64,000 nucleotides of DNA from Takakia lepidozioides (GCA_030704615.1 CM060732.1:61318001-61382000), one strand, 5' to 3'; shown: positions 8,601 to 49,454, counted from the stretch's first letter. Numbers and translations are program-made. Notes: generated by a model not told the origin, from the letters alone.

Positions 8601-11600
8601 TGTTCTCTTTCCAGCTCTTTCTGTGGGACCCTCCTCTCTTATCCTCTTCAGGTATGGGAATCCTGAATATTGCAAACACAAGCAATTACTGGGAGTCATC
8701 TGATGGCTTTTGTTTTGTTGCTGGATGGCAGTAATAAAGAGGGATTGGACCTCGTGAAAGTAGCAATAGAACGAGCTGGCTACACTGGCAAGATCAAGAT
8801 TGGCATGGATGTTGCCGCCAGTGAATTCTTCACTCGTATGACCACATCTCTTGGGGGAGGGGGCTCAATATCACATTACTCTGCTTAATGATGCACTTCA
8901 TCTCAACATTTGGGTTCTTTGATACCTTCTTTCAGTTCTCTGTTGTAGATTCAGTGTGTCCCGTAGGACCTTCGTGTTGACTATACGACAACATTTTACA
9001 GTTTTGATTTTTTTACAATCAGAAACGAGGGCTGATGAATTTCTGGGCTATATGAAAATCAATGGTACAGGATCTACAGATGTGGCCATCTCTTGCAGCA
9101 AAGAGATGTCAAGACAAAGAACAAAGTCAACCCAAAATGGGTGAAGCTTGAAATGCACTTGCCTAGGATCCTCCTTTCCTCTGTGTTAATCCACACACAA
9201 ATGGGGTAATGTAGTTGAAAATTGAGGAACATATCTTTGCTTAAGCAGAACAGGCACCTGCAGTCCAACACATCCAGCACACACTTTTTCCCTGATGGGT
9301 GGAAATCCAGTTTTGGGTTTGGTTTGCACTTCGTGATGTTTATGACTGAGGATTTATAGCAGTGATGTTCTTACTGTCGAAGCTCGTGTGTGCAGCTGAC
9401 AAGAGATATGACCTGGATTTCAAGACACCCAACAACTCAGGGAAAGAGGTTAAGAGTGGTGATGAGATGATTGAAATGTACAAGGATTTTTGTAAAGGTA
9501 CATCTGCTTCCATTCTTGAGAACATCATGCAAGCTTTCCATTCACTTTTCATGTGCACTGGATCTTGAAGACAAAGGTCTAAGACCAAAGTTGTGATTTC
9601 CCACCAGAAAGACGAAGACGGTCTACTCACAAGGTGGTTTAATGTGTGTAGACTATCCTATCATCTCAATTGAGGACCCGTTTGAGCAAGATGACTGGGT
9701 GCACACCAAAAAATTGACTGATTTAAATATTTGTCAGGTATGGTTTTGTTGTACTGGTTGCAGAGCAAACCTTACATTTATCTTTTTCTGCTGTAAAGAA
9801 GGCAAGGTGTGGTCAGGACTATTTGTTTACTTAAGAGACAAATGTTGAAGTGCCTTGGTCACTAAAGCATGCACCAGGAGAAAGCTATGGATATATAATA
9901 AAGAGAAAAGCCATGCCTGTAATATCCAGCTTAGTTCATTCCTTGAGTTGTACTCTTGATTCATACTTTGCTGGCATGTATACCTGGACAGATAGTAGGC
10001 GATGACATTCTTGTGACCAATCCCAAGCGTGTCGCAAAGGCCATCGCGGAGAAGACATGCAATGCCCTGCTTCTTAAGGTGCGGATGGTTCTCTTTTGGG
10101 GTGTTGAAGTTTTGTAGGGTATTGAAGGGAAACATCAGTCTCCCTCTTGAGCCTTGTGTAGTTCGTTGATTTCCGTGGTTCTTTTGTCTGTGGATATTCT
10201 TGTTATACATGCCTGGGGCCTTGGGCTTCCCTCAGATGTAATCTCTTACTTACTTTTTCTCTTGACACTATCTTGTGGAGTGTAAGTGCAACGAGATGTC
10301 TTCTATCACATCTTTCTAAGGTGAAGCACCAGAGCGGGCCATTAGAACATCCAGGCCAACGCTCAGCCCCATCCTTAATCTCCATAATGTGAATGTAATC
10401 AGCTATGGGCAAGCAGTATGCAGGGTAAGGGAGCAGTCATGAGTACATCTCTCTGTATGCCTAGGTTAATGGTAAGATGAGTCTCATGCATTCCATTTGA
10501 GAGAGGGATGTACTCATAAACTACCTTTGTGAGGGGCTCACTCCAGTAGTATGAACCTTGATACAAAAAATTAGTTTGGGCTTTCCAGATATCCTCTAGG
10601 AAGCCCTTCACACAAGCATCAATCTGCTGTGTGTGAGCAGCCCAAAAATGAGGCCCCAACAGGGCCAGGGCTTTAGGCTCAGCCTCAACATTTTGAAACT
10701 TCATTTGAGAGCATCCATGGGGCCGAGGGAGAGAGAATGTACTCATAAGACGTTGTTTGCCGTAGCCTTGTGGCCATTGACCGAGGGAGAGAGAGAAAGA
10801 TAGAGGAACTGACTTTACAATGCCAATGAGAGAGATAGGGGTACCATGAGCTAACAAAGTTGCCCAATAACGGCAACCAGCAGGATAACAGGGGATTGGG
10901 TATGGGCATGGGCTGGAGAGCAGGTGAATCAAATAGGGACAGTGACAGAGTCCATTGAAGCTGTGAACATGTCTAAGAAGGCTGGTTGGGGAGTTATGGC
11001 ATCTCATCGGAGCGGGGAGACTGAAGATTCCTTCATTGCTGACTTGTCGGTTGGTCTAGCCACTGGCCAGATCAAAACCGGGGCACCCTGCCGAAGTGAA
11101 CGCCTTGCTAAATACAACCAGGTATTTTCTTTATTTTCCTCTCACTGAACAAGTTGTATTGGAAGTCTACGTTCTCAGGCGAGTCATAGACATAGTTAGT
11201 GTCATCGTCCTATCAATCCTACTGTTTCTTGCAAGTGAAAGAGACTCCGCAATGATTCAAAAGGAGAAGAGCGACTCTGGGGTGCTTGTCTGTTGGATGT
11301 CCCTTAGTTAAGTCCCCATATAAGCTCGCCAACTTGAGGTTTTAGAAGCGTGGAACACCTTCAACTTATTTCTTTTTGAACATAGACCTCCAGCAGGAAT
11401 GCTTCTTCTACTGGTCTTGGCACCTCAGGATTTGAAGTAAATAGGGTTAGGAACTTCCTAGTGGTCAGCCTTGTTGCTCGGTTGGCTGCAAATAAACTCC
11501 ATCAAGGACCTATGCGGCCCTATCTCAGGATCCTGCTTTGTGTGACCTAAACACTTGGGTATATGTTGAACCCACAGTTCCTTCATTACCAAGGCAGGTT

Positions 11601-11836
11601 GGAGTGGATAATGTGAAGAACACATTTTAACCTGGAGAACTTTTGGCCACTCTCACTTCATATATTTTATGCCTTTCCCATTGCCATTACTATGCAATGG
11701 ATACTGTGTAATGGTAAAATGCCTGTTTTGTTCGCAGCTATTGAGGATCGAAGAGGAGCTTGGGGACAAAGCAGTGTATGCTGGGCTGAACTGGCGGCCC
11801 GCAATGGCTGCCGCCCCAGCTGCTCCTGGAAAGTAG
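5687..11836 (+). CDS. ENO3: Enolase, ENO3/ENOc type with N-terminal extension; 13 exons: 5687-5791, 6545-6699, 7017-7191, 7383-7454, 7780-7896, 8110-8190, 8499-8575, 8732-8835, 9396-9497, 9652-9737, 9992-10078, 10924-11121, 11738-11836
   Basis: Exons join in frame and give the enolase motifs [67 protein letters not shown] and [13 protein letters not shown]. The N-terminus [35 protein letters not shown] matches the plant cytosolic enolase 3 type. Intron 7 is GC-AG. Confidence 0.93.
10504..10701 (-). mobile_element. 5'-truncated copy of the (CT)n-associated LINE with an internal 3'-UTR deletion
   Basis: Encodes [35 protein letters not shown], matching the C-terminus of the 26.4-28.8 kb LINE. 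Flanked by direct repeat CATTTGAGAG (10494-10503 / 10702-10711). Confidence 0.85.
10737..10780 (-). mobile_element. 44-bp 3'-terminal mini-copy of the same LINE
   Basis: ATGTACTCATAAGACGTTGTTTGCCGTAGCCTTGTGGCCATTGA is nearly identical to the LINE terminus at 26391-26434. Flanked by a 14-bp direct repeat CCGAGGGAGAGAGA (10723-10736 / 10781-10794). Confidence 0.88.
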
Positions 11837-12354
11837 TCACATGGAGGTCAACTAGTAAGCAAGCAAGGGCACTTCAGCTCGATACAGCTGGCAAAGCTTT
11901 ACTTGTGGGAAGTTTTGTGTTTAACAGGAAATCGTGTAGGGGTTGTGGAACGTCTGGGTGCTTTTCACATTTGCAATTTCATGAGAATGGTAATAGCTCA
12001 TGGAGAAAAAATTGGTAATGTGGGGAATGGGATGGTCATTCGGCTAAATGTAACCGCCAGAGTCAGGGGGAACAGCAGAGATGAATACTTTTTTATCCTG
12101 CAAAACTGGCAGTAGACTCTCTGAAAGTACCTGCTCTTGTATTTGTAAGGTTCTGTTTCCAGTGTCATGAACTTTGGAACAAAAAAAGTAGGCCAGTTAA
12201 GACGGGTCCTTCAGAAGTAAAATGGGAACATTGTTCCTAGTTTGTGTGGTCTTCCACACGCAATTGGAATTTGGAGCATTGAAGTCAACTAGACCTGTTG
12301 AGAACATCTCCAGTTCACTGCACAAGTGCATATCCTGAATTAACCTCATCTTAT

Positions 12355-12484
12355 ATTGTCTTCTCTTCTCTTCCGTTCTCTTGTCTTGTCTTGTCTTCTC
12401 TTCCCTTCTCTTCTCTTCTCTTTACTTCTCTTCTCTTCTCTTCTCTTCTATTCTCTTCTCTTCCCTTCTCTTCTCTTTTCTCTC
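12355..12484 (+). repeat. (CTTCT)n pentanucleotide microsatellite
   Basis: Imperfect CTTCT/CTTGT run of about 25 units. Confidence 0.9.
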
Positions 12485-13785
12485 CAGCCAGCAGGGACAG
12501 AGAACCAGTTCCTCTTCTCATCTCCAGCATTTATTGTCTGCAATCAACCCAATGTCCCAGAGAAGCTTTCAGCTCCCTGCAGCCTCCTACCTCCATCATC
12601 TGCCCTTGTTTCATTTTTTCTGAAGTGGTTTCTTCTTGGATCGTACCTTGACTTTGATCCCAACTGCTTTGCCCTTTTGTTCGCGCCTATCGAACTGAGG
12701 CAAGAGTTAGCTCGATCCTCGTGCATATTAACCTATGGACTCTGAACTTAACCTTAGACATTAAACCATACCCTAATTAGTGTCAGAGTACATGTCTAAC
12801 GGTCGCTCAGCTGCTTTAAATGAATATTCCGTCCTACTGACTTATCCATATTCGTTACGAAATTTAAGAGGCTGCCATGGTTGCATGTCGATAACGTGTC
12901 AGTCGTCCATTGTAGGGACATGGCTGGACCGTTGAGCGTAATTTGAATGTCGACCGCTGATAGCTGTGGTTAGTAAAGTCGGTAAAAGCGTAAGTTCTCT
13001 TACAAGTGAGGGGGAGTTAATAGTAAGTGAAAAGCCACATTTTCCACTTTTACTAGTAAGTGACTAATGGCATCTTTACAACTGTATAGATGAAATGTAC
13101 AAGAATCTATGGATGAATGAGCGTGGGATTTCGTGGATGTTGAACTGATTGGCAGCTGTCTTTGCTTCATGTTGTAGGACTAAGTAAATTCTTGGGTGGG
13201 AGGACTGAGGGAGTGAAGTTTGCCTTAGATTGTGGGTAAAGAAAGCTAAGAGCAGTGAGAGTGTCTGAGTGTGAGAGTGTTTGTGAAAGTCTGTGTATCT
13301 CTGACAGAGCGTTCACAGCTTCTGCGTGCTTGTACCTGCTCCAAGGCTTCCAATTCGGTAACGGAGACGCCTGCGGACACGAACATTGCTTCTTTCTTGC
13401 AGTTTTGGTAGTTATTTAGTATAGTCCTTGGTCAATTTGGTGGACGCTCTTCAGCAGGGCCTACATTTGCTGCAATGTGAGTGCGCTTGTGTATTATAGA
13501 GGGAGGGAGGGAGGGAGGGAGGGAGGGGGAAACTCAGATACGTACAGAGATTGGAAGACGATACGTGCAGAGGAGACTGCGTTTATGCTTGGATCGAAGT
13601 CAAGTAGGCGGACTACCTGTTTAAGCAGCAAGAGACAAGCCCCGCGAACACCGGTAGCTGAAAGGGGAACGAGAGATTCTGGTAGCGGGAGGTTTTCCTG
13701 GTATTCTCACTGAAAGGAGGTTGGAAAATGCGCAGAAGACCTGAATTTCGAAGGCTATGGTTTGAAGTGGAAAGGTGACACCATC

Positions 13786-16700
13786 ATGAGATCCGGTAGC
13801 CTTTCACAAATGCCTGTCCTAATTTGTACATCTCACTATTTGCCTCTGTCTGGCTGTCGGATCTAGTTGAGCCCCGGCTGTAGAAATTTCCCTGAAGTCC
13901 TGTATCCTCCCTGTGCCTTGTTCCTAGCAAGGGGAGAGCATTTTGAGCAATGAAGATGGCATGTTTCACCTGAATCTTTCTCGAGTGAGCCTGAAGCCTG
14001 TGGAGGGAAGAATCGGAAAGGGATTGCGATCAGCTGGTTAGGCATTACCTCGGTCTTTTCCTAGGATGCACCGTCTTCCTCCCTTCCTTTCACAATCGAC
14101 ATAACGACTTTCCCGAATAGAAGGATGTCTACCTCTCTCTCCTCAAGCTCTGGGCTATTTGGGGACCTTATATTTCTCCTTTCTCTCTCTTCTCTTCTAG
14201 ACACACCTGTCCCGTTAGCATGTTGTCATTAAGAGGTTTACGGGAAAAATCTGAATGGCCACAGTGTGCTACATGTATAGAAACCGGTCCCACTAGAAGA
14301 GCGGGCCTTCTTACCTGGTGATGCCTTATTCCGCTCTTCTTTTGTCCCTCCCTCCGCCACACTCTTTCTGCTTCATTCAACCTAGGGGGAATCTGTCGAT
14401 GGTAAGCAAAGTCTAGCTCCCACTCTGATCCTTGGCAAGGTTCTCTCTTATTCAACGTTACCCTGACAAGGTTTAGTTCATCACGCATCTTAAAGGACTG
14501 TGTCTTATCGAAAAGCGGGGTGCCGACGGTGAACATATAGGACCTTCCTATGCCGTCTTCAGCCTTCACTCAGCTGAAATTTCCGCCTTTTTGCAGCTGA
14601 TGAGAAAGTAGTCTGTTGTAGTCCTTCTTTTGGCTTGAACATCAATATTGGTCCGTCCTATGCAAGGCCTCAAGTGCGACGTGCTTGGGTGTCTTCTGAA
14701 CCGAGGAAGCAGCATATTTGGCATTCTTTGAATATTTCACTCTTGTTTCCATGATTACAAGTGAGCGGACTTGTAAATCACATTTTTTCTGGTGAAATGC
14801 CAGTAGATCATTGGTAGCATACCAGTAAAGGTATGAAGTAGCAATTGTAACTCAGCATTGGTTGTGTTTAGGATGGCGCTCCAAATCGGAGGAAGCATCA
14901 CCATCAAACTCTGAAGAATTCAGACGGAAGAAACAAGAAGGGAGTTTCCGGAGGGTTGTCTTAGGTTTGTACCCATGACTCGACAATATTGTGAGATTTG
15001 CATTGAGAATCTTGCCAGATCTGTTTGCTCTGTGACAGGAACTCCACAAACCACTCATTCATTCTCAATTTTAGGATTTCTTTTAATGGTTGTCTTACCC
15101 TCTAATCACTGCAGAGAGGGGGTGTGTGTGAAATATCATATTCCCAAGTGTGCTATGCCTAAGCTACTTATAAGTTCTCATATCCTCAAGACAATGCTGC
15201 AGAAGGACTTAAGGAATTCTCTAAGCGATTTGTGAACAGCGACAACTTCATTATTGAGATCCAGGGGTGGTTACAAGAAAATCTTGAGAGTCTATCATCA
15301 GGGACATCCCAATTTCATCCTCCATTCCAACTCGACGATCTCCGGGTGCTGGACTTTGCACTGGAAGGTGTTCCATTCCAACAGCTACTGCGAATGCCAT
15401 CAGTCCAGACATCCACACCTCCGTCTGGTAGGTGTGTGCGTAGGGGCAAGCCTAATAACTTCATAAATTTCTGCCTCATTTCACATTTTTTGGAAAAAAA
15501 AAATTGATGACAGTACCATTTGATTACCAAGAAACTTTTGACTAGCTGGGGTCCTGGTCAGCAGATGGATGCTCCTCTGAATTTCTTATGACCTCCCACT
15601 ATAGGCTCCACCCAATACTCAACACACAAGATCCAACAGACAACAACAACAGCAATATCTAAAGACTTTATGCCGAGACTGACGGAGTCCCCTGATGTAT
15701 GCATTCTGCTTTTGAAAGAACCAAGACTTTTCAAACACTTCTAGTTTCGTGAAGTGATGGAGATTTGTGATGAGTCTCTCTCTTGCTAGCAGAGGCAGAC
15801 ATATATCTGGCAGTGGAGGATTTCTTGCATGCAAGCACTCAACGATTGTGGGAGACTTTTTGGACAAGTTCTGATGATTCCCAATGTATGCCTTTCTTCA
15901 TAAGTGGCCCACCGAATTCGACTTCAAAGTCAAAACTGGTATGGTCAATGAATGCTTGCAATTGACTTCATGAAACTTGCCTGAGGTCATCGCATTGTTA
16001 CTCAAAATCGTTCTCATGAGGAACTTTTTTCATCATTCATGTCAGTGAGAGGCATGGCTGAGTGATTGGAAGCATTGATTTGATGGCCATTGACTGGTAT
16101 GTGTTTGTAACATGGTTTGGAGGTTGTGCTGAGCATCATATTGTTTGCCAGTAATCTAGAACTTGTGATAACCATGTAGGGATGTTTGAAACAAAAATAT
16201 CATTGCTTTGGCCTATCGGATTCAGAGAACAAATTTCAGATACTCTCAAGTCTTCAAGCTCCGTAGACACCCACTGGGAGTAACTGATGGGTGCTGTAGT
16301 GTATGGATACGAGTCTGTTGACAGCGAAGTACAGTAGAGCAATTACTCATGTACTTGAACCTGGTATAGCAAATTTGCAACTTGTAGGTTTGCAGTCTGG
16401 CGGAAGTTTCAGGATTTTGAAGCTTAACTAGCAGATGTCTTTACAGCTGTTACCTCCTCCAAAGAGCCACATTTTCCACATTGACCATCATAGCATATAA
16501 TTGGTAGTTCACTCACTGGAGTACCACGTGAACATCATTCAGGACCAGACATTGCCAAATAAAAGAGAGGATATCAAAGACATCTTTGCTAGATTGACCC
16601 ATTTTCCTTGGCAGGCAGCTATACTCGAAAGGGCAAGTCCGATGGGGAGGGTGAGCACACTTCCTGGTGTTGCCCTGGTAGCAAAGAGCGGCAGAAGTGG

Positions 16701-18999
16701 AGTACTGTCTGGGCATGTGCCATGGGAACATGTTGCAGCGTTTGTGGAAACTATGGATGATGTGACAGGGGCACTTTCCCAAGGAGGGCACACTGTCCCA
16801 GCCCTAGGGATTGTAGGACGTGCTCTTTTCCATGGCCTGGTAATGCTTTCATCTCGACTTCTGGCTGAGAGAAATCCTGTGATATGCCACAATGCAGATA
16901 CAGCATATGTCTTGTTTGTAGATACACAACAGGGAGGTGTGGTAAGACTAAAAGGAGACATTGCAAAGCTGGAAACAAACACAAATGAAGTCTACATTAG
17001 TGCTGCACATTGGATGAAGGAGCATGTGGAAATTGCCATTTCTCCCGTTGATCAAGTGTGGAATAGATTTGGCAATGCAAATTGGGGAGATATTGGTGCG
17101 CTGCAGCTGCTTTTAGCACTCTACCATTCAATTGAGCAGTGCAAGGGCCCACCACAAAAACCAGTGGCAGGGATGGCAGCACAACACTGTGCCAGGTTGC
17201 AGCAAAGGCAGATGCAACGCAAAAGTCTTGACATCCAAGAAAATGGTGCTGCATCCTCCAACCATAGCCACTCCGACCGTGGCAGCCATCCTGAGATAGT
17301 TGAGATCGAGGAAGGAGACGAGGTGAGCTACAGCCTACATGCTCCCACTTTCATGTACTCTCTGTGTGCAATTATTCTGTAGTAAGACAGCCCTGGTTGA
17401 AAAACCAAATCCTGCTTCAAGGTTTTGATCCATGTAAGGTTCATTTTTTAGTCAAATGACAACTTGATGATTACAGAACTTATTAGGACCACTGCAGGCC
17501 CAAAGGAGAGAGAGGAGGGATGGCATCTGTGGTGCCAGCATGTCCACATGAGAGCAGGGTATAATATTTATACTTCCCCTGGAGGTGCATGGGACAGACC
17601 TTGATTGGGGTGGCTTGCATATGGTGCAATGGCAGGTTACCCAGCCCAGGCGCAGTCGGGGTGCCCCTCAACACATGATGAAGTTTGAGCCTGGCACAAT
17701 TCTATGGCTGGAAGATGCTCATTGGCAACGGGGTTTTCAGATTCATGAGCAACTAGGCAGCAGGCTGCAATCATTGTACAGAGCTTCTTCTCTTGACGAA
17801 GTGGAGAAGTCTCTCACTGTCTATGTGGGGGCACACCCCTCACAGCTGGAGCCCTCATGGGAAGATATGAGCACATGGTACCAGGCAAGTGGATGACCCT
17901 CGTACTGCATCCTGTTTTGGGATTAACCACTGGGGGATCTCTGCAATGCTCAGTCACCCTAAAACTTCCCCTGGCCTTGGGTATAATGAAACCGTCACTC
18001 AGTTCTGTCATTATTCTTGGATGGGATGTTTTGGTCTCTACTTCCAGAGAGCTATTTGGGAGAGTTGCATATTGTAAGTCAAGGGTCTCGAAGGAAAGGT
18101 GTCAAGCACTAGATCTGTAATCTGAACAAAAACTGTCTCTGATGTTTCCATAGCGTTTTTGTCAGCAACTAGGCTAGACACAAAAACCAAAACCAAATAT
18201 GGTTTTGCTTTGCAAACTTCTAAGGTTACATGTCCTAAAATGTGGGGTTGTTTTCCAGGTTCAGAGGCAGACACGTGTGTTGAATGTCATGACGCAGCGG
18301 GGTATCTCCTGCAAGTTTTTGCCACAGATAATTGCATCTGGCAGACTTATGCATCCAGGGCCATGCTCAAAGAAAAGCGCCATGGACCGCTGTGACCACC
18401 CATTGTGTGGGACCCCGGTCCTTGTGACCTCTCCTGTAGGGGAGACTATTGAATCGGTCATAGAGAGGGAGGGCCTCTTTTCAACAGACGAAGCTCTTCG
18501 CTGCTGCCATGATTGTTTGTCTGCCTTGCAGAGCACAGTTGCTGCAGGGATCCAACATGGGGATATAACCCCAGAGCATGTTATTCGGGTTACAGGGGCC
18601 GATGGCGAGTTTTACTATGTGCTGGCGGACTGGGGGCGTGGAGTGCTGGAGGAGAGGGATAGGCCAGCTGTAGTCCCCAAATTTTCATCCACATCCGCAC
18701 TCCAAGAGGGGAAGCTCTGTCCAGCTTCAGACGCAGAGAGCCTGGTCTATCTCCTCTTCTTTGTCTGTGGGGGTAGTACGCCAGATTTTGAAAGCATGGA
18801 AGCTGCATTGCAATGGAGAGACACAGTCTGGGCCCGGAGAGCCATTCAGCAGCAACTAGGCGAGATCTCTGCAGTTTTGAAGGCATTCGCCGACTACGTA
18901 GACACACTCTGCGGTACACCCTATCCAGTCGATTACAACGTATGGTTGTGTCGTTTGAAGCATGCCCTTAGTCATGATGACCCTCGCATCACTGTATAA
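13786..18999 (+). CDS. Plant-specific protein with a C-terminal kinase-like domain (At2g40980-like); exons about 13786-13795 (tentative), 14872-14964, 15203-15427, 15790-15938, 16615-17322, 17636-17884, 18259-18999
   Basis: Exons join in frame and carry family-like motifs (FALEGVPFQQLLRMP, VEDFLH, QVWNRFGNANWGDIGALQLL, YVGAHPSQLEPSWEDMSTWYQ|VQRQTRVLN, CDHPLCGTP, HGDITPEH, LADWG, CPASDAESLVYLL). The first micro-exon (MRSG) is a guess from phase. The last intron is GC-AG. Family assignment is from memory. Confidence 0.8.
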
Positions 19000-22488: not shown

Positions 22489-22719
22489 AGCAACGGGGGA
22501 TCCAACCGCTGCACGAACTGCAATTCAAACTCTTCTTATGTGAGCAACACAATCGCAAGCAAGCAAATCTCAAGGTGCGCAAAGCAGACAGGGAAGATGC
22601 AGCGGAAGAATCAGCCTGCAATTGGCTATGGCGTGACGAGAGAGACGATGCCCCTCGGGCAGGTCAAGGGGCAGCATGAATCATTTTATCATCCTGCCCG
22701 TGAGCTCGGATATCCATCG

Positions 22720-22886
22720 CCACGTCTGCCCGCGACCAAGGGGCAGCTCTCAGAACAATTTTCGACCTGCCGGGATTAGATAGTCGGAGGCACGTGGCAG
22801 AGTGCAAGCCTTGTGTTGCAGCGTGGCTGCACGGCAATGCGCTTTCTCGTTAAGAAAATGTTGAACGAATGGTTTCGTCGCACGTG
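22720..22886. promoter_or_regulatory. G-box/ACGT cluster in the divergent CP12 / DnaJ promoter
   Basis: CACGTGGC at 22791-22798, CACGTG at 22881-22886 and CCACGT near 22720, upstream of a photosynthetic gene. Confidence 0.45.
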
Positions 22887-23343
22887 GACGGAACTATGCG
22901 AGAATCCGTCCGCGTCCCAGGTGCTGTCCCACGGGACGGATGAAGGGACCGCTGTGACGACACCCCCCGAATTCGCCACTGTACAGGGGTTTCGCCAATA
23001 TATTTGGCGAGACGTAAAATATAATTATGGCAAAAGTGGAAGCAAACCCTAAAACTGCGAGCTTGGGCCATGGGTGGCGAATTCACAGTTGTTTGATGCG
23101 AGCTACTGAGGTAGAGCGAGGAAGAGATGGAGAAGAGAAGGGCAGAGAGGAGATTGGGGAGCTGGAGGGGGGGACGAAGTCTGTAAGGGTAGAGTGAGGT
23201 ACGGGACGAGTTGTTGCGAAAATGAAGGAGAGGTTTGCGGAGCTCTGTGGTTTTTTCGATGATTCAGATAGCGGAATGTGGAGAGTTTTGATTATGTGTG
23301 AGCAAGTGGGGTGATTGTTGCGAGGAAAGTAGAGGCGGGGGGC

Positions 23344-24617
23344 ATGGAGCGGCTGGAGATGGAGGGACAGCCTCCCAGAGAGCTGTATGCGTTGTTGCAT
23401 CTCTCTCCGGAAGCCTCCGACGACGATATAAAGAAAGCATATAGACAATGGGCACAGATATATCACCCCGACAAGTACCAGACTCCGCAGGTTAGCCTTT
23501 TGTTTCTTTTTTTTTGCGCGTGTCTCTCTCTGCTTTCATTCTCCTTTCCTCCTTTGTGTCCACCTACATTTGCACATGGACAATCTGCTTCTCTGAATCT
23601 TTCTTTTCGGGAATTTTTGTCTGGCACCTTTCCTCTCAGATATGCTTATTTCTCCTTAGGAATTGTTCTTATTACATTCTGTTTCCCAGTTACATCTCCC
23701 GAGGTTTAAATGAGGGTTTAGGTTCTATCATACTATTGGCCGACCCCAATTTGTCTGTCTGAATTTGCATTTTTGTCCATTATTTGGGAAAGAGGGAGCT
23801 GGGATCAATTGAGCTGTTATTCCTTATAGGTTACTGATCGGAAGTGAATTTTTCTTACTCCCGTTTGGCCCCTTGCGCCCATATCTCTCTCTAATTTGCT
23901 GTTTGTCTCTGTTTATACTCAGGGGAAGTAGATAAAATCATCTAGAACACACAAGATGGATACCATCGAAATGGGGAATTGGTGGGCTATCGTTAGCTCT
24001 CCATCAGATCTCCGTTACTTCGTTTAGGGCAGTAAGTTCAAGCAGTGTTTGCATCCGGAAAAATCTTAGATTTTACAGAGTCAAAACTAGTTCTAGTGTA
24101 ATGGACCCTAGTTACGCAGCTTCAAGTATTGCAGGTCCCGAATCAAGGGGAATGCAAGAGTTGCTAGATATTGAGACCATGATAGCAAGGTGAGGGAAAG
24201 TAGATGCCTTACATTTTCATAGGGGAAGGGGTTCTTCAGATTGATTCTCACAAGTCATCCAGCTAAAAACACACAGAAGGACTAAAGCTTTATTGCATTG
24301 AGTGGCTGGCAGATGCAAGACACTGCAACCCAGAATTTCCAGCGGATTCGGGAGGCTTATGAGATTTTGAGTGACGAGCGTAAGCGACAAATCTATGATC
24401 TCTATGGTATGGAAGGGTTGACATCAGGTTTAGAGCTAGGGCCAAAGCTAAAAACAAGAGAAGAAGTGAGGGCAGAGTTTGAGCGGTTGCAGCAGCGGCA
24501 GGAAGAAAGGCAACTGGCAGCTCATATCCACCACCAAGGCTCTCTCCTTTTCAACTTGTCATTATCCGAGTTTTTAGAGTCATTCAAAACCGGGCCAAGC
24601 ATAAATGGGTCTGTGTG

Positions 24618-24670
<53 letters not shown>

Positions 24671-27600
24671 TGTCAGTTCCGCCCAAACTGGGCGCGGGGT
24701 CAGTGGCCACAAGGCTACGGCAAACGTCTTACGAGTACATTCTCTCTAAGCTGTCAGCCTGTCTGCTGTCCCATGGACTAAATCAATTTCTTTTGTCTTT
24801 CTCTCTCTCCCCCTCTCTCTTTCTCTCTCTTGTTGCTTACTTCACTTCCGGCGCGAGCCCCTCACAAAGGTAATGTCTGTTCCCTCTTGTTCCACCAAGC
24901 TGGGCACAGGGTCTATGACCACAAGGCTACGGCAAACAACGTCTTATGGGTACATTCTTTTTACTTACTCCCATCTCTCCTATCCCGTCTGGTTGGTAGC
25001 TTGGTTGGTAGGTAAGTCTAGTCTTAGTATTTGTTTGTTATATATGTCATGTGTACATATAAACTGTGGAAGAGAAATCAAATGGATGTTTCTTTGTGGT
25101 CTCTCTTAGGTGCAGCATCTTTGGTCATAGTCACCAAAGTATTAAATCAAGTGAGTGGACTTGAAAGAAGGCTGTATGAAGGGTGTTACGCCATTCTCTC
25201 CAAGTGAACTTGTAATCATCAGCCTAGTGATTGATAATTACCTTGTTTGCAAGGTAACGAATGCCTCAGCTTTGAGCACCATGCTCAAAGCCTTCAAGTG
25301 AATTGGAGCTAACTCAAGTTACTTGAGTTAAAACAGGCATTTGGTCAGTGAGGCAGCTTGAGTTACTTGAGAACGTAACTCAAGCTGCCTCACTGACCAA
25401 ATGCCTGTTTTGAACACAAAAAGTGTTGTGTTATGTCCCATCATCAAGTCTAAATACTTGAACTAGTGCACAATATCTAAGGTGGCTCTTCTTCCGTCTG
25501 TTTATGTGCATCTCTCTTGATGACGTTTATGTGGGTCTCTTTTGTGAGATTTCTTCATGTACTTCAGGGTCTTCTCTACATCTCTTTCTCCTTAGGCAGG
25601 TTCTTAAGGTCTCCAAATAAATGTGGGAGTGCTTGGTCAGATGTTGGACTCATCCCTTGATCTATAAAATATCATCTCCCTAAAAATGTACGGGTGTGGT
25701 GGGTGGTATGCAGCATGGCAATGTCAACGCAAGTACAGGCGCAGGTTTCGAAGAGGGATACAGTTCTGCTAGGAGGCAACATGGCATTGCGACGGGGTAT
25801 GGGTGGGGGCTCAGTGACAGTGGTTTTACGACGCCAAATTTCACCAATTTCTTCCGTGGAGGTCTTAGCTATGGCTGGCCTCCGGTCCATTTTGAGCATC
25901 CAAACATCAAGGTTTTTGCTTTTCCCTCTTTTCAGTATAGAAGATAATTATAATCTGGAATGCTCCCAAGATTTAAGTGATCCTAAGTAAAAACTTTTAA
26001 TAGGGAGGAAAGTATGATAGAGTACAAGTGATTATCTTATCAAGCTAATGCTAACTGCTTAGCAACACAACAGATTGTACTCATAAGACATTGTTTGCCG
26101 TAGCCTTGTGGCCATTGACCCCGCGCCCAGTTTGAACGGAACATAAAGGGACAGAAACTACCTTTGTCAGGGGCTGACGCTGGTAGTATGATTTACCTTG
26201 GAATAAACAGTTGATCCGAGATTTCCAGATATCCTCCAGAAATCCCTTTTCACAAGCATCAATCTGATGTGTGTGATTTGCCCAATAGCTAGACCCCAGG
26301 GCCTGGGCTTTTGGCTCAGCCTCAAGATTTTCATAGTTGTTAAACAGAGGTACAGGCACAATTTCCTTGTGCAACACAACAGAGAGAGAGATTGTACTCA
26401 TAAGACGTTGTTTGCCGTAGCCTTGTGGCCATTGACCCCGCGCCCAGTTTGAGCGGGAACAAAAGGGACAGAACCTACCTCTGTCAGGGGCTGACGTTGG
26501 TAGTAAGACTTAACCTCCATATAAAGAATTAATCCGGGTTTTCCAGATATCCTCTAGAAATCCCTTCACACAAGCATCAATCTGCTGTGTGTGATTTGCC
26601 CAAAAACTAGGCCTCAGGAGGGCCTGGGCTTTTGGCTCAGCCTCGAGACTTTCAAAGTTGGTAAACAGGGGTACAGGCACAATTCCCTTAATAGATTTGA
26701 AGAGAGCGTCTCTTTGGTGAGAGAACCCCGGACAGTGTATCAGAAAATGAATACTGTCTTCAGATTGCCCACACAACGGGCAATTGCACTCTCCCTTTCC
26801 TCTCTGCTTCTGTTTGCTGTTCAAAGGTAGGCTTCCTGCCCTGAGTTTAAATTTCAGTCTAGTGCCGAGAGTGGGTAGACCCTTGAGGTCATCCAAGATG
26901 TCCTCCCCCATGTCACAGACTGGAAAGAAGTTCAGGGAAGTTTTCTGCCTAACTTCATTTTCATCAGACAATCTCATGGCAACAGACATGGCTGAGGACA
27001 CTACAGCCTCTAAGTCAGATTTATCCAGCAGGGTCAAGACTTGCGGATCCAGGTCCAGGTCCTTGAGGATCTCTTCTACTCTCTTCTGCCAGGACTTAGC
27101 CTGTTTGACAGGGCGGTCCTGTTTCCAAGATATAGAGTCGATTAATTTAGGATATCTGGTGTTGGGCATATGTTGCAGCTGACCCCACCATCTGACCTTG
27201 AATTCATCTCGTCGGGAGCTTAAGGACGGAATGCCAAACTCACCCCGAACAGCCACATTGGCTGTTTTGGAGCATGCTGACATACACTCCTTAAGCACCC
27301 CCACTTGAATGGATTCTAGAGACTTAGCCTGGTTGGAGTTATCAACCCATATAGCAGATCCGTACTCCAAGGCAGGTCTAATAACGCGACAAAGCATGGT
27401 TTTCTCAACCTCAGAGTTGACCCCTCTGCAGTGGAAAAATTTAGTGAGCCCCAGAGCTTTGCCCTTGCCAGTTTGAACAACTTTCCGGATATGTGCATCC
27501 CAATTACAATTGGAGGAGAACTCAACGCCCAGGTAAGTGTAGGAAGGGAGGACCGGGATCTCTTGGCTACCCCACTGCCACTTAAGATCACTTCCTCCCT

Positions 27601-30600
27601 CTCCTCTGTCGTTGAATGCTACCACTGCACATTTGCTGACATTAGCCTCTAGCCCCCAAAGATCAAAGTATCTCTTCGTGCAATCAATGAACTCCTGGAG
27701 ATTGGTTGGAGTCTCCCCTATGCCTGCGAAGTCATCCGCAAACATAAGGGCTGGTATGGTGGTATCACCCACCCTTAACCCAAATCCCTCACTTTCCACA
27801 TCCTCGAGGAGTTGATTGATGAAAACATTGAAGAGCAGAGGGGAGAGAGTACATCCTTGAGCTACACCTTGGTCTATGTCAAAGAAGTTGGACTTCTGTC
27901 CGTTAACAGTGACACAGCTTTTGGTGTGAGCATACAAGTTGTGGACAACTCTCCACATCTTTCCCTTGATCCCACAAGACCAGAGGCGGAACCATAGGCC
28001 ATCTCTCCACACTATGTCATAGGCCTTTTTGACATCCAGGAAAAAGACATAAGTGGGTTTCCCTTCTTTTTTCCTTCCCTGGATAGTCTGGCTTAGAGTG
28101 AAGATATGATCCACACAGCCCCTGTTTCGCCGAAAGCCAGCTTGGCCTTCATGGAAACAACCTCTAGACTCCAGATCAACCTCGAGACGAGTAACTCTGC
28201 AGAATGTCTTGCCAACAGCATTGAGGAGCATGATGCCACGGTAGTTCCCCGGTTCTTCTCTGTATAGATTGACAATGACCCCCTGTCGCCAGCGAAAGGG
28301 GATCATTTCAGTCTTCCAGATAAGGTTAAAGAGGAGAACTAGGGCCTCTATCATGGGATCGCCACCGTGCTTGATAAGCTCATTGACAATACCATCAGGT
28401 CCACCAGCTTTACATCCATTTAAATGTTCAATTGCTTCCACAATCTCAGAAGAACTAATGGGAGCATTATAAGCCATTGAAATATACTCCAGTTCATCAG
28501 GGCTGTTTTGAATCATAGGAACAGTTTTTCCAACTGTGTCCCTCCATTCAGCAGAAGACCCCTCACTGTTAGACCTAGAAGTTCTGCCAAGGATACTGTA
28601 GTGAGTTTCAAAGGTTTTGACAATGTCAACCGATGAAGTCACCACTGCACCTTTAGTAGTCTTCAGCGCTTGTACTTGCTGACCGTTTTTCGGTTTGTAC
28701 AAACGTTGAAGGGCCAACCAGAATTTCTTGTCATTACCACCATGGTGGTTTGAGTTTATTTCACTGTATAACTTGTCCCAGTATAAACAGAGAGAGAGAG
28801 AGAGAGAGAGAGAAATTATGTTCATGTATTTGGTGCCTACTTAGGGGCATCACAGCTTTTAATAGGGAGGAAAGTATGATAGAGTACAAGTGATTATCTT
28901 ATCAAGCTAATGCTAACTGCTTAGCAACACAACAGAGAGAGAGAAAGAAAAATTCTGTTCGTGTGTTTGGTGCCTACTTAGGGGCATCACAGCCTTATTT
29001 GCAGACTTCCTCTTGGGTAGACTGTTGGTTCAAGGCAAGGAGAAGCTCCAATGGTGTCAAGTTATTGCCTGGCACGCGCTGAAGCTGAGCTGGCATCATT
29101 GTTACTATGTTGACAAGGGAAGATAAGCAGAGATGAGAAAGTGTTAGAGAGTAGAATGAGACAAGGTAGCCAGATTGGTACACGGTTGTGTTCCTTGTCT
29201 GGATTTTAACGCTAATGCAATTAAGAGTGTTGTGCAGTTAGAAAGTGGTGTCTGGAAGTGGATGTAGATCACTGTATTACGATACTGACACAGCCAAGAA
29301 CTTTTACACGGTGGTGGTGGACAGGCAGTTATCATCCCACGCGACAGGAACACTAGGCTTGTCACTGTCATTGAGGGATGGGTCAGTCACCTTAGCGAAC
29401 ACATGGTCACGGCAACTGTCCGAAGACACCACTGGCAATGTACCCCCCCCCCCCCCTTCTCTCTCTCTCTCTCTCTTTCTCTCTCTCCATGAGGCAGCTG
29501 TGTTGTTGTGTGACACACTGTGGACATTGTGAAGTTTCTTTCTTTGATTATCTTCTTTCTTCTCTCTTTTTTGACACTCTTTTTCCATGAAAGGTGGAGA
29601 TACCCCAGATTGAGGTTTCTAGACCACCTTGATCACAAACATGATGAGCAAAGAAATGCCAACCCTGGCCTGCAGGCACTGAAGCAACATCTTATGAGTA
29701 TATTCTCTCTCTCCGTCTGTGGCATGCCAGCAGAGAATCTATCACTATACTGGTAGTTTGACAGTTTATACTGGGGTTTGTACAGATTTCACTGGTTGTA
29801 GGGCCAGACACAGGGATTGCAGTTGGTTGGCAACGGCATGGCAAGAAAAATGCTGGCTCTGGGGAGTTGAAGGTCAGTTTCCTAGGTTGATGTGTTGTCC
29901 TTCCCTCAGGCCCATACTTCTTAACATCGGTTTCTTGTTGTTCTACTTGGGGCCCCCTGTGGATGTAGTGTAGTTTTCTCTCTCTCTGTCCCTCAATTAT
30001 GTAAGGCAGGCAAAGTGGCTGTGGAACCTCCAGGTGCCTTATGCCTTTTGTTATCCACCATCCGTTGGATAGAAGTATGCACTTTAGTCTGCTTACCATA
30101 GCCTTATGTCCCATCACTGCAAGAAAAGGAGAGAGACAGTGAAAGACCCGGGGGGTGGGGGGCGGAGGATGTGTTGCCATCTAGTGTGCAGTGGAGGCAT
30201 GGCAGCACAATTCCTTCTGTCGAAGCTGAGCAATTCTGAACAGCATTTTTCTCTCTAAGCATTGAACTGAAGTTTGTTTTGGACTGTTGAAGGTGGGGCC
30301 TACTACCTTTGGAGTATCTGGGCAGTACATTCGGCATTTCTCAGCCAGGTCACAGGGTCGAGTCACGGCCAAGCTTGGGAGGTCAAACCACTGCTCTGCT
30401 GCCTGGTTCTCTCTTTTTATGGTTGTCCATGTATGGATGAATTTTGAGAATAGGGTCTCTGCAAATGCCTTGAAGCTGTACTTCTCTGTGCTGCAAGTGT
30501 CAAACTAATAAGCTCTTAAGGTGGCATGCACTCCAATTGTTGGGGGTTAACTTTCGCCATGAGATAACTACTCTTAACATTTCCATTTCTTTCAGTACTC

Positions 30601-31329
30601 TTTCATTCTCACAAATTTTGGAGTAAATCACTCATGAACCTAATACGAGTGACATAACCAAGGCTGATGTGGAAGGATGAGATGTTCATCAGATCTTTCC
30701 TACTGTGTAAGGTGGAGATAGGAGGATAGGAGTGTAAGTACTTCACTACTCATTTTCACAAAGCTGACAAGATACTGTACCTGCTTCACATGGATCAATG
30801 CAGCACGGGAATAGAGGTTGAGATAGGGGGGGAGAGGCGACTGTCGGAGCACAGCTCAGCTGCTATGTTTTGTGTTCTTGGTCTTCAGGTACTTACTGTC
30901 CTTGCTTTGAGAACATTTTGGTTTCTCAATATAGGGTGTTTTCACATAAATCAAGCAATGTATGAGGTCACAGAGCTCTTGTTCTTGAGCTATCTGTCGC
31001 TCTTTGGACCAGTATCATTTTCTGTGTATCATAAATTTTGGTTGAGTTTCAGAGCTGTTCCATTGGAAAACCCTTGACCTGCTCCAAGAGGGCTTAAAAG
31101 GCACTTCCTGAAAAGGGTCTGTCATAGCCAACAAATGGTTTCCTTTGTTGTTGAAAGTGGTATCCAGTGGAGTCTTCATTAGACTTCAGAACCAAGACCT
31201 GAGACTGCTGTACTAGCAATTCTGAGCATACCTCATTTAGTCGTATTGACCTGAAAATGCTGCAGGGTGTTTCCTGGAAAGTTCGCTTCACTCGTGGAGG
31301 CCAAAAGTTTATTATCCCTGTATGGACAG

Positions 31330-31372
<43 letters not shown>

Positions 31373-32545
31373 CCGACAAAACTGTCAACCCTCGGCACTA
31401 GACTGAAATTTAAACTCGGGGCAGGAAGCCTGCCTTTGAACAGCAAACAGATGCAGAGAGGAAAGAGGGATTGCAATTGCCCGTTGTGTGGACAACCTGA
31501 AGACAATATTCATTTTCTGATTCTTTGTCCTGGGTACTCTCCTGAGAGAGACGCCCTCTTCAATCCATCAAGGGAATTGTGTCTGAAGTCGGAACCTTTG
31601 CTTACCAACTTTGAAAGTCTCGAGGCTGAGCCAAAGCCCAGGCCCCTTTGGGGCCTGGTTATTAGGCAAACCACACACAGCAGATTGATGCTTGTTCAAA
31701 GGGATTTCTAGAGGATATCTGGAAAACTCGGATTCATATTCTGTTTCCAGGTAAATCATACTACCGGCGTCAGCCCGTGACAAAGGTAGTTTCTGTCCCT
31801 TTGTGTTCCGCTCAAACTGAGCGCGGGGTAAATGGCCACAAGGCTATGGCAAACAACGTCTTATGAGTACACACTCTCAAACTGTTCCTCCCAAACTGGG
31901 TGCAGGGTCTATGGCCACAAGGTTATGGCAAATTATGTCTTATGAGTACATTCTCTCTTTTAAAGTATGTGCATGTTAATAATGCTGCAATCCTTCCAGA
32001 TTCACCACAAGGAAGTTAAAGCACCAGCCAGTAGTCAGATAATCTCACTAGTCTTACTAGGGCCATGGCCAAGGGTTGTACCCTTTGCTGTTGAATGCTC
32101 ACCATTATGGTTGAGTGTGCCTGATATTTTAACTGTAACAGGTTCTCACATATGCCCATGTTATGAGCATGCATTGAGGTAGTAACACACACATTGCTGG
32201 GAGCTGATGAGGGTCGTGGGAGTTGTAGGAGCTAGTCATTGTCGTGCACGATGAACTGAATGGTCTTGATACTCAGTGAGTGACCCTTAGAAGGAAGACC
32301 ACATTCTTCAATTTGGTTACCTTGCAAATGGATGTCTGCTTGTTGTTATCTCTCTGGCTGTGGTTTGACTGCCAGTCTGCTGTACGTTCAGATTGTACTT
32401 TGCACCGCGCTGAATCCAGTGATAGCTGCTGGAGCGTTAGTTTTGCCATCGTCTCTTTATGCTCTCCTCAAGGTCTGCTCTCTCTCTCTCGCTCTCTCTC
32501 TCTCTCTCAATGGCCACAAGGCTACGGCAAACAACGTCTTATGAG

Positions 32546-32612
<67 letters not shown>

Positions 32613-35600
32613 CCTCTCGGCACTATACTGAAATTTAAGCTCAGGGCGGGAAGCCTACCTTTGAACAGCAAACAGATGCAGAGAGGAAAGGGGGATTGCA
32701 AATGCGCGATGTGTGGGCAACCTGAAGACAATATTCATTTTCTGATTCATTGTCCTGGGTACTCTCGCCAGAGAGACGCCCTCTTCAAATCCATCAAGGG
32801 ATTTGTTCCTGTACCTCTGTTTATCAGCTTTGAAAATCTCGAGGCTGAGCCAAAAGCCAAGGCCCTTTTGGGGCCTAGTTATTGGGCAAATCACACACAC
32901 CAGATTGATGCTTGTGTAAAGGGATTTCTAGAGGACATCTGGAAAACTCGGATCAATTGTCTGTTCCTATGTAAGTCATACTACCGGCGTCAGCCCTGCT
33001 CAAACTGGGCGCTGGGTCAATGGGCCACAAGGCTACGGCAAACAACATCTTATGAGTACATTCTCTCCCAATCTCTCTTGTTCCGCTCAATACTGGCCGC
33101 AGGGTCTATGGCCACTGGGCTACATCAAACAACGTCTTATGAGTACTTTCCCTATACATAGCTTTGAGATCCCGAAGTGTCTGGCCCTCTTACCGACATG
33201 AGTCACTTTGTAATGTGTTGTTCATATCTGTTGAAGGGGTGTCACTCCTTTTTTTGGAGCTCAGCCTAGTTCATTTTTGGTCAATGATTAGGTGGAAAGT
33301 TCAAATTTGTTACTTTTTAAAGAGACTAAGTCACTGAGGATGGAAATATGATCCTTCCATCTTCCTTTCTGACACCTACTTGAACACAAGAGTTGGCTTT
33401 GTCCCTTTCCCAGTGACTTTGTGATGACCTATTCACATATTTGCCTGTTGTACCTCCAACGTGTATATATGCAGATATTTGTTGTAAAGCCATACAATCT
33501 ACGGAGAAAGCGGCAAAAGAGCCTTGAGCTACGACGGTTGACTGTTACTCAGGTCTTCTATCTTTCTCATTTTCAACCACTCGTGTGACTCACTGCCACT
33601 CCATGAATTTATTTTACAGGAGCAGTAATATTGGAATCTATTAAGAAAATGAGATGTGGAATGCTTAGAAAGCCAGTTCCATTCTTAGGATTTGTCACCG
33701 AAAACTTGTAGTTTCATGCTATAGAGTCCATGGCCCCAGAATTATATGTAGGAGTCTTAAGTATACGACTAGTGGTCCAAAAGTATGAATGTATGGATGG
33801 TTTTAACAGAGGGTGATCCTCTCCAGTTAGTATCATCCTTGTATTTGGAAGTTCACCTGCTTACTTCAAGGTTATGGATTTGGTCCACACCTATTAGGTT
33901 CTGCTTGTGGGCAAAGACTCAGTCCATGGTTTGAATGGAAAATTACATCATAGTGTTTGTATACCACATTCCCTCACAAATCTTGCTAAAGAAAGATGTT
34001 TCTGGCAACCATTACACTGTATCCCATGACATTCCAAACAAACAATCGTCAAACAATTTCTTCCCTTGGTGCTTTCATTAAGTTTTTCCTAGAATGTGAT
34101 CTCAATCATGATCGTTGCATTTCACATTGATTGTCAATGGTCTTTGCACATGGGGCCACAGGTACTTGAGGCAAGGGCTGCATCTGAAAAAGCTCAAGAG
34201 CTTTTGAAGAATGTCGCAGAGCGGAAGAAACAGAAACAAGCACAGAGGGAGGGATTGGTTATCCTAGAGGCTTTGTATGGGGACATAAAAGCACACACGG
34301 AGGGCAGGACCTCGAATGGTGATGAGACTGAGGTGCGACCAGAAGAGGATGATTCAGATCTCCCACCTCCCTACTTGGACGTTGCTATCCCTCTGCAGTT
34401 TTTGGTTGATGACTCCGGCAATCTTCGGGTTTGTCTTCTCACACTTTCTCCCCCACCTGCCTTCCTTCTGGCTCTACTCGCTTCCCCTCCTTGAGACACT
34501 ATCGCTTCATCATTTTGACATATGGAAACTTATGACAATCACCCTGCTGGCCTTGGGACAACTCTTTATCTTGACTGCTAAGTCCGTGTCTGCCGTTGCT
34601 TGCACACACGTGAGCGTAACATCCTTCAATTTAGAACCAGAGGCTCTTAAAAGTGAAAGCTGGCATCCTGGGACAAACCCCTTGTTACTTTTGCTAAAAG
34701 AATACCATGGCATGCGGATGCAGCTGCATGAAGGAGTGAAAAAGGCAGGGCTTATGGGCTTTTGTGACCCTTGCCCTGGAGAGTCAAAACGGTTGCAAGT
34801 TATGTACAGTTACCAAGGTCACCACTATCAGGTACATTCTATTCAGGCGCATGTTACCTCAAGGCACCTCGTAGACTCCATAGATTTTCATTCTTTCTCT
34901 CCCCAGCTCAAAAGTATGGTTATCTTTCTTCTTTTCTCTCCAGTAGTGTGTGAATTTTAGTATTTGTGTTGGGTAGAGCGGACATTGGCAGTGCTGGAAT
35001 CAACACTAAACTTATTGTTATGCTTTGCTCCAAACTCTTTATTCACTCCTCAGACCAAGCCTGTAACCCAATTGTTGCCATCTGTGGGGAGTTTGAATGA
35101 TTACTTCACCATGGGAGGTGATTTATCGTAATGCCTGGGCAGTAGCCCTTCAGGGTGAAGGACGCCATAATTTACACTTGCTTCAGCAGGATCAACCCTT
35201 TTTTCAAAACCCTGAATGAATAATCAGAGTTCTATGGAGGAAAGTCTGTTTACAAGTATTTAAATTAGAAGAACAAAATTTTTGCTAGGTGCTTGTGTCC
35301 TGACCCTAGAGCTATGAGGCTGATGCAAAGTCTAGGGGCGATGCAGAGCCTAGGGGCACCTCAGCATCATATCTTGATTCTTTATTCATCCATCCCGCTA
35401 CACACCGCATACAGGTGTTATCATTGAAATGGCTGACCATCCACATAGGTACTTCCGTTTGTAGATGACCTTTAACCGGATTCACTGCCTAGAACCTCCA
35501 ATATAGACATGTGGATCGGAACCTGTACAACCATGTGGCCACCAACCTGTAATGCTTAGCTATCTGTCAGAGCTGGCTGCAAGAATCAGGGTGTGGGATA

Positions 35601-49320: not shown

Positions 49321-49454
49321 GGAGCAAAGGTCGGGTTCCCCCCCCTGAGTTTGAATTAAGTCTAGTGCAGAGAGGGTGATTTAGGGGCTGAGCTTTGGCT
49401 CAGCCTCAAGATTCAGAAAGTTGGTGCATAGAGTCCATGCAAATGGAGTGCTGT

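Follow-up and report, generated by a model that had tools for sequence, protein, structure and literature searches.

The 64,000-nucleotide stretch of Takakia lepidozioides DNA analysed here (GCA_030704615.1, CM060732.1:61318001-61382000; called the window below, with positions counted from its first letter) carries, between 10.5 and 33.1 kb, a dozen copies of a long interspersed nuclear element (LINE) that lacks poly(A) and abuts TC repeats. We think it probable that these copies represent an RTE-X-type LINE family in a land plant, primed on TC by a repeat at the 3′ end of its RNA. The introns that harbor the copies belong to two plus strand genes, one encoding enolase and the other DNAJC11-like:

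6934-7245 and from 8104, plus strand: enolase gene, Enolase_N and Enolase_C, respectively, with exons also at 8535-8564.
~10930-11120, plus strand: enolase exon SHRSGETED...RSERLAKYN.
23311-23709 and from 24298, plus strand: DnaJ exons of the DNAJC11-like gene.
34316-34960, plus strand: DnaJ-like_C11_C exon of the same gene.

The copies at 10.5-10.8 kb are flanked by plus strand enolase exons, and those at 24.6-33.1 kb are bracketed by the DnaJ exons and the DnaJ-like_C11_C exon; from 34 to 64 kb, a profile hidden Markov model (HMM) of the terminus finds no convincing match (best E 0.29). The exon positions and the HMM thus bear out a preliminary description of this DNA, which had placed all copies in introns of two genes and none in the other half. 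Two weak LINE-like BLAST fragments at 49325-49441 were rejected as non-collinear and probably due to chance. The individual copies, with their target site duplications (TSDs) and the features that bear on them, are as follows:

10508-10701, minus strand: 194-bp copy that has lost an internal segment close to its 3′ end and keeps only the last 11 nt of the terminus (10508-10518); TSD CTCTCAAATG (CATTTGAGAG) at 10702-10711 and 10494-10503; target TC run of 5 nt only.
10737-10780, minus strand: 44-bp copy beginning at the base of the 3′ hairpin, in an enolase intron ~150 bp from an exon; TSD TCTCTCTCCCTCGG (CCGAGGGAGAGAGA) at 10781-10794 and 10723-10736.
24677-24740, plus strand: 64-bp copy bordering (TC)26 (24618-24668) on its 3′ side; TSD TCTCTCT..GCTGTCAG on both sides, its unique part at 24669-24676 and 24750-24757.
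24845-24955, plus strand: 111-bp old copy with a TC-rich 5′ flank (24796-24830) and a degenerate TSD, TCTYTT..CTTACT.
26075-26370, minus strand: LINE2, 296 bp, older, 88% identical to LINE1 and directly downstream of it; TSD TCTGTTGTGTTGC (GCAACACAACAGA) at 26371-26383 and 26062-26074.
26392-28785, minus strand: LINE1, the longest and youngest copy, 2.4 kb, ending ...TATGAGTACAA; TSD AACAGAGAGAGAGA at 26378-26391 (3′ copy) and 28786-28799 (5′ copy, TCTCTCTCTCTGTT, continuous with (TC)12 upstream).
26414-26436, minus strand: LINE1 3′ hairpin, GUC..U GGCC ACAA GGCU A.GGC, ~25-45 nt from the element end.
28856-28992, minus strand: unfilled paralogue of the LINE1/LINE2 target, a 137-bp tandem unit directly upstream of LINE1.
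29666-29703, plus strand: degenerate terminal fragment ...TATGAGTATAT, then TCTCTCTCTCC; HMM match at 29682-29702, E 0.045.
31373-31951, plus strand: composite at 31.4k, consisting of 18 extra nt, a 480-bp copy (to 31872), an 11-nt linker, and a 69-bp terminal unit (31883-31951); TSD TCTCTCTTTT at 31362-31371 and 31952-31961, with (TC)18 upstream.
32509-32550, plus strand: 42-bp copy identical to the LINE1 terminus, with TC at 32478-32508 upstream and (TC)34 at 32551-32618 downstream.
32614-33148, plus strand: composite at 32.6k, consisting of a 448-bp copy (to 33061), a linker, and a 70-bp terminal unit (33079-33148).

A pattern of 30 nt from the reported 3′ end, with up to 3 mismatches allowed, matches 8 times in the window but not once in 100 shuffles. 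BLAST with the longest copy together with the profile HMM, which was trained on ten termini and finds ten at E 3e-14 or better, brings the total to 12, with 3′ ends at ~10737, 10508, 24740, 24955, 26075, 26392, 29703, 31872, 31951, 32550, 33061, and 33148. All copies share the terminus ...ATGAGTACA[A/T]T, none has poly(A), and directly 3′ of each lies TCT, TCC, or CTCTC. The preliminary description had proposed about 12 copies of a single 3′ terminus that lack poly(A) and run directly into CT repeats, and both statements hold; its terminus positions agree with the 12 found here, in a list that mixes start and end coordinates.

Only 5′-truncated copies are present in the window. LINE1 retains an intact 771-codon frame (26510-28825, the first codons running into the flank) whose product has an RVT_1 domain (E 2.5e-30) and a C-terminal CCHC motif, as expected from the earlier claim of a LINE with reverse transcriptase (RT) and CCHC; relative to full-length relatives, its 5′ truncation falls between the endonuclease (EN) and RT. 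The shorter copies, 42-480 bp in length, are collinear with the 3′ end of LINE1 and 80-100% identical to it, and at least 7 different 5′ ends are represented, some of which recur: i) two copies start at (TC)AATGG, the base of the 3′ hairpin; ii) three start at TGTTCC, ~77 nt before the element end; and iii) two start at CTCTCGGCAC, ~490 nt before the element end. Because they are collinear with LINE1, 80-100% identical to it, found in both orientations, and heterogeneous at their 5′ ends, we regard the copies as independent 5′-truncated LINE insertions; a reading as a short interspersed nuclear element (SINE) was dropped in view of their collinearity with the coding part of the LINE and the variety of their 5′ ends. 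Nor does it seem at all probable that most of them are local segmental or tandem duplicates of a few insertions, in which case their clustering would be uninformative about targeting: the 31.4k and 32.6k composites do share a truncation point, linker, second unit, and 80% identity, and the LINE1/LINE2 site does lie within a 137-bp tandem duplication, but the diversity of 5′ ends, TSDs, orientations, and identities to LINE1 argues otherwise, and self-BLAST reveals no duplicated flanks besides the 137-bp unit.

The TC run existed in the target before insertion, and is not only a tail. Each of the 9 readable copies has TCTCT or CTCTC on the sense strand within the 20 nt before its 5′ junction, compared to 3.8-5.1% of background windows; this must be target DNA, since the 5′ flank cannot come from the 3′ tail of the element. 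The TSDs, 10-17 bp in length, start with TC units and then continue into unique sequence (GTTGTGTTGC, CCCTCGG, CAAATG, GCTGTCAG); each of the four TSDs quoted in the preliminary description was recovered at both ends of its copy, and further TSDs were found for the 24.67k copy and the 31.4k composite. An uninsertd-looking version of the site survives in the unfilled 137-bp paralogue, which differs from the outer flanks of the LINE1+LINE2 pair by 4 mismatches in the 5′ part and 0/81 in the 3′ part, and contains the uninterrupted target TCTCTCTCTCTGTTGTGTTGC exactly once, with (TC)5. The TSDs of LINE1 and LINE2 overlap by 6 nt in this unit (28931-28944 and 28924-28936, respectively), from which it follows that one pre-existing 11-nt TC run was used twice, by LINE2 first and by LINE1 second. 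Both the flanks and the paralogue uphold the earlier suggestion that at least some of the repeat is target DNA.

The 137-bp duplication (28856-28992 and 28800-28855, minus strand) lies in an intron of the DNAJC11-like gene, where one unit is empty and the other has received two insertions; its 3′ parts show 0/81 mismatches although LINE2 differs by 12% from LINE1.

The same data make it hardly credible that TC is a tail only, generated by RT slippage or read-through at random sites with TSDs that are chance low-complexity matches. Such a tail would be in keeping with the lineage-specific 3′ repeats of related elements (see below) and with the (TC)34 that follows one copy; however, TC is found in 9/9 5′ flanks where ~5% would be expected, the TSDs reach into unique sequence, the unfilled paralogue already has the run, and long TC tracts are mostly 5′ rather than 3′ of the copies. 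Moreover, in the anchored cases the TC units at the 3′ junction never exceed those of the 5′ TSD copy (LINE2 has only TCT), and any tail therefore amounts to a few units at most. The repeat lies on both sides of the copy at 32509-32550 and of LINE1, while other copies sit at runs of 5-11 nt and have TSDs with unique sequence; the shortest target run is CTCTC, at the 10.70k copy. Thus the earlier proposal of sequence-targeted priming in a microsatellite is right about TC in the target but wrong about the microsatellite, which is not required: CTCTC suffices, and what remains is a short priming or nicking preference.

Head-to-tail stacking, also part of the preliminary description, is present but has two sources, repeated hits on one TC run and a composite bounded by one TSD. 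The pair at 10.5-10.8 kb has separate TSDs at two TC runs 11 bp apart, and the 42-bp copy at 32509 interrupts the TC tract that precedes the next copy. The 31.4k composite, by contrast, is bounded as a whole by a single TSD and therefore entered as a unit, which could reflect template switching or a subfamily whose 3′ unit is duplicated; the 32.6k composite matches its layout with 80% identity. We also note that the 31.4k composite opens, after its 5′ TSD, with 18 nt (31373-31390, plus strand; CCGACAAAACTGTCAACC) similar to the first part of the 77-nt terminal unit (TGTTCCGCTCAAACTG), which would fit a head-to-tail array as its source.

Of the 33 perfect TC runs of at least 8 bp, 31 fall within the first 33 kb of the window, and about 15 adjoin LINE junctions. 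The intron bias seen here is inseparable from the distribution of TC runs or the age of the DNA; the copies do sit in introns, but the notion of a family that colonises introns receives nothing from this single window beyond codistribution with TC. The enolase gene region also contains a pentanucleotide microsatellite, (TCTTC)24 (12359-12481, plus strand), which has no LINE terminus associated with it.

To what clade does the element belong? A protein search with the plant open reading frame (ORF) returned no close plant match. The best match, 49% identical, is encoded by L001, a 3.2-kb metagenome contig, followed by large clusters at 38-43% identity and by many Ectocarpus proteins; the best named homologue, Ectocarpus P0010, is 38% identical over 98% of the query (E 5e-154). 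The C-terminal string of P0010 is that of curated RTEX-1_Ec32, and P0016 ends like RTEX-2_Ec32 (PMC12477816, Suppl. 2), in a library whose LINEs are listed as RTE-X, RTE, and CRE only (PMC12477816). A FastTree of 46 sequences with Shimodaira-Hasegawa-like support, built without Repbase references for Tx1, L1, R1, and RTE, pairs the plant ORF with P0001 (support 99) and places it inside a clade (support 100) with curated RTEX-1 and RTEX-2 and with single-ORF elements of 1,379-1,423 residues (including P0133, P0137, P0151, and P0164) that carry an AP-type endonuclease domain (Exo_endo_phos) as well as RVT_1; relative to these, the plant copy has lost its 5′ part up to a point ahead of RT. The sequences found in the protein search also share the CCHC motif. 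Human L1 ORF2p matches the plant ORF at E 1e-29 only. Two full-length relatives on large contigs of the European Nucleotide Archive, L003 and L004, have a 5′ untranslated region of ~200 bp, with no room for ORF1 between the 5′ TSD and the ORF start.

Judged by these affinities, the element is RTE-X-like, anchored on one curated family from Ectocarpus. An L1/Tx1 reading was dropped because the nearest curated relatives are RTE-X and the full-length relatives leave no room for ORF1, in a tree that lacks a Tx1 reference; R1 membership appears unlikely given the positive match to RTE-X. The preliminary description had likened the element to the microsatellite specialists of the Tx1 and R1 clades, a comparison that the closest curated relatives do not favor; the RT tree built here puts the plant ORF with curated RTE-X proteins, and its statement that no plant equivalent was known still stands, as we found no paper describing a land-plant counterpart. 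Other searches added little: the C-terminal 332 amino acids matched nothing at E 1e-5 and were uninformative, a protein atlas yielded only generic RVT_1 clusters without plant taxa, and metagenome scans with the exact 22-nt terminus or a gapped clade-level 3′ motif produced no match.

The relatives share more than protein sequence. The last ~60 nt can be aligned between the plant copies and L001-L005, with the common motif ...TGGG(C/T)GCG(G/T)GGTC(A/G)ATGGC-N6-GCTA(C/T)GGCA...(A/T)TGAGTA..., and the hairpin within it is kept in relatives from animal-type, marine, and other metagenome contigs (L002, for example, lies among immunoglobulin (Ig)-domain genes on a large contig, and L005 is from a TARA ocean metagenome). 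The hairpin has 8 pairs with 96.9% of cells paired; the closing pair covaries (CG 4, AU 2, GC 2); only 2/500 shuffles reach the observed score, and slid controls are no more than 52% paired. Support is confined to this local hairpin, as the 116-nt 3′ region in its entirety folds no better than its shuffled versions (z = -0.7); Rfam contains no corresponding family. The same stretch is coding in Ectocarpus and L002 (…GRVVNG…), but in the plant element, where the ORF stops ~115 nt before the element end, it follows the stop codon in another frame; retention of the hairpin despite a different frame or no coding at all implies a constraint on the nucleic acid rather than the protein. The element thus appears to be of the "stringent" kind, with a conserved 3′ stem-loop that shows compensatory changes and would presumably be recognized by RT.

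The 3′ repeat, unlike the hairpin, differs between lineages: (TTA)n in L002-L004, TA-rich in L005, (C)n in Ectocarpus, and (TC)n in the plant. Wherever both junctions are readable, the TSD starts with the tail unit, as in the full-length (~4.4 kb) single-ORF elements L003 (TATTAATTGCTGTAG; 15 bp, 2289-2303 with 6762-6776) and L004 (ATTATCAACAGCCAAATGG; 19 bp, 2287-2305 with 6676-6694), whose 5′ ends are GGGGTCTGCGCATGCG and GGTTCCGCGCATGCGCC, respectively. On the L002 contig, a 32-nt match located 3.9 kb before the element is not a TSD but a repeat of the host Ig-domain gene, and was rejected. Curation of the Ectocarpus RTEX families records a "(C)n 3′", "C-rich" TSDs, "(C)n termini/TSD", and elements that "can be present in tandem" (PMC12477816, Suppl. 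3), and six green-algal RTEX families all end in microsatellites (Ohshima 2013, Table 3, PMC3747384), where only L1 and RTE are listed for flowering plants (PMC3747384); in the RTE clade, the 3′ repeat is linked to the first base of the TSD (Nishiyama & Ohshima 2018, PMC6007223). Since tail and TSD start covary among relatives, a rule of tail-target pairing is likely to be clade-wide.

We propose that the RNA would end in the conserved hairpin and ...AUGAGUACA[A/U]U followed by a few UC units without poly(A); that the bottom strand would be nicked where it reads (GA)n; and that the 3′ end of the nicked (GA)n strand would pair with the UC end of the RNA and prime cDNA synthesis, i.e. target-primed reverse transcription (TPRT). 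Such pairing would cause the TSD (10-17 bp) always to start with TC units on the sense strand of the element. Repeated hits on TC, whether in short runs, in microsatellites, or in the flanks of older copies, would build head-to-tail stacks. Truncation at the 5′ end is the rule, and recurs where the element itself contains TC or where the 3′ structure begins at its base. Implicit in this scheme is our inference that the site is set by pairing of RNA and primer and not by an endonuclease that reads TC. Targeting by an enzyme that recognizes and nicks the (GA)n/(TC)n duplex, making the RNA end irrelevant to the site, as has been proposed for the Tx1-clade elements Kibi and Koshi and the R1-clade elements Waldo and Mino, is to our minds unlikely, even though a TC run is found at every insertion, some copies are embedded in long microsatellites, TC continuing to either side (32509-32550), and one 11-nt run was hit twice, 8 nt apart. 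Targets as short as CTCTC and TSDs that vary from 10 to 17 bp do not suit a dedicated nuclease; the TSD start tracks the tail in relatives ((TTA)n with ATTA..., (C)n with C-rich), for which a single pairing rule is simpler than specificity re-evolved time and again; and the nearest relatives are RTE-X, not Tx1 or R1.

We wish to stress that several points weigh against an RTE-X-type element primed on TC by its RNA. Sequence analysis alone cannot tell pairing from endonuclease specificity, and in this window there is no full-length plant copy, the EN region not being among the copies. The clade assignment depends on one curated anchor from Ectocarpus and a FastTree without Tx1, L1, R1, or RTE references. 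The informative sites number ~9, come from one 23-kb stretch, and include some that are dependent (the composites share a layout, and stacked copies share flanks); where tail and TSD both read TC, the line between them cannot be drawn with certainty; and the 5′ TSD copy of LINE1 is continuous with (TC)12, as opposed to (TC)5 in the unfilled unit, indicating that the length has changed since or during insertion.

Microsatellite-specific LINEs of animals reportedly include Kibi and Koshi of the Tx1 clade and Waldo and Mino of the R1 clade, Kibi being associated with (TC)n. These resemble the Takakia element in having the target repeat in the flanks of copies, head-to-tail arrays, and no normal poly(A), but no close sequence relationship to them was found, the relatives here have a single ORF rather than ORF1 and ORF2, and the target can be as short as 5 nt. 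The eel element UnaL2 is a stringent-type LINE with a 3′ stem-loop and short 3′ repeats; the juxtaposition of a 3′ hairpin with a short tandem repeat in place of poly(A) is alike, although the sequence is unrelated and recognition of the Takakia hairpin by RT is our supposition. Much closer are RTEX-1_Ec32, RTEX-2_Ec32, and the green-algal RTEX elements, where we find i) 38% amino acid identity over 98% of the plant ORF, with a C-terminal CCHC and FLxxxWxxR; ii) the 3′ nucleotide motif GGTC(A/G)ATGG..., a simple 3′ repeat without poly(A), and tail-like TSDs; and iii) tandem copies as a possibility, in elements that are abundant, 5′-truncated, and often intronic; the differences are the plant host, (TC)n instead of (C)n, (CA)n, (CAA)n, or the like, and a 3′ motif that is non-coding in the plant. 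For RTE LINEs and Au-like SINEs, in which the first TSD nucleotides likewise correlate with the 3′ repeat, Nishiyama & Ohshima 2018 (PMC6007223) suggest that cleavage or priming is positioned with the help of the repeat in the RNA template. Plant RTE belongs to a different clade, ends in (GTT)n, and has TSDs that start with T downstream of a T stretch (PMC6007223), whereas the match to a dinucleotide repeat in Takakia extends over 3-11 nt and is much more conspicuous. The Takakia element is a new land-plant member of the RTE-X clade, whose tail-matched rule is already on record in algal and animal-associated relatives.

What is known of plant LINEs comes almost wholly from flowering plants, for which poly(A)-tailed L1 and (GTT)n-tailed RTE alone are listed. 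A third clade, RTE-X, is alive in a land plant, one copy still having a 771-codon open frame, and its insertion rule can be read from the sequence. A hairpin that stays constant while the 3′ repeat varies constitutes a natural experiment on target choice by the RNA end in TPRT. The family also accounts for part of the intronic (CT)n microsatellites in the Takakia genome, and would be misannotated by repeat libraries based on angiosperms. A broader conjecture, which we put forward tentatively and with some doubt, is that RTE-X carries a portable "address label": an ancient hairpin, common to copies from plant, brown alga, marine plankton, and animal-associated sources, would recruit RT, the few repeat units behind it would pick the target by pairing with the nicked strand, and a change of repeat, such as (TTA)n, (C)n, or (TC)n, would retarget the entire family, with the (TC)n version both exploiting and lengthening intronic TC in what would be the first embryophyte RTE-X.

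Several features of the window lie apart from the LINE family. An intronless PPR gene of the PLS class, with E and E+ motifs and an 845-codon frame, is located at 27-2564 on the minus strand; its protein is most similar, at 50-54%, to proteins of the lycophyte Diphasiastrum complanatum, with gymnosperms and ferns ranking behind. A tandem array at 48800-50700 (plus strand) has a 136-bp unit and a 273-bp higher order, with matches of 87-91%; its ORFs consist of degenerate PPR motifs (..EEVHGDIVKSG..ALVDMSAKCGCVEDA..) that cross-match the PPR gene at 27-2564 by 70-76%, and the array resembles a satellite that arose by amplification of a PPR-repeat fragment. Finally, an ORF at 46036-46431 (minus strand), in the gene-poor half, contains an Ulp1/C48 protease domain (E 2e-10) of a type typically carried by plant DNA transposons.

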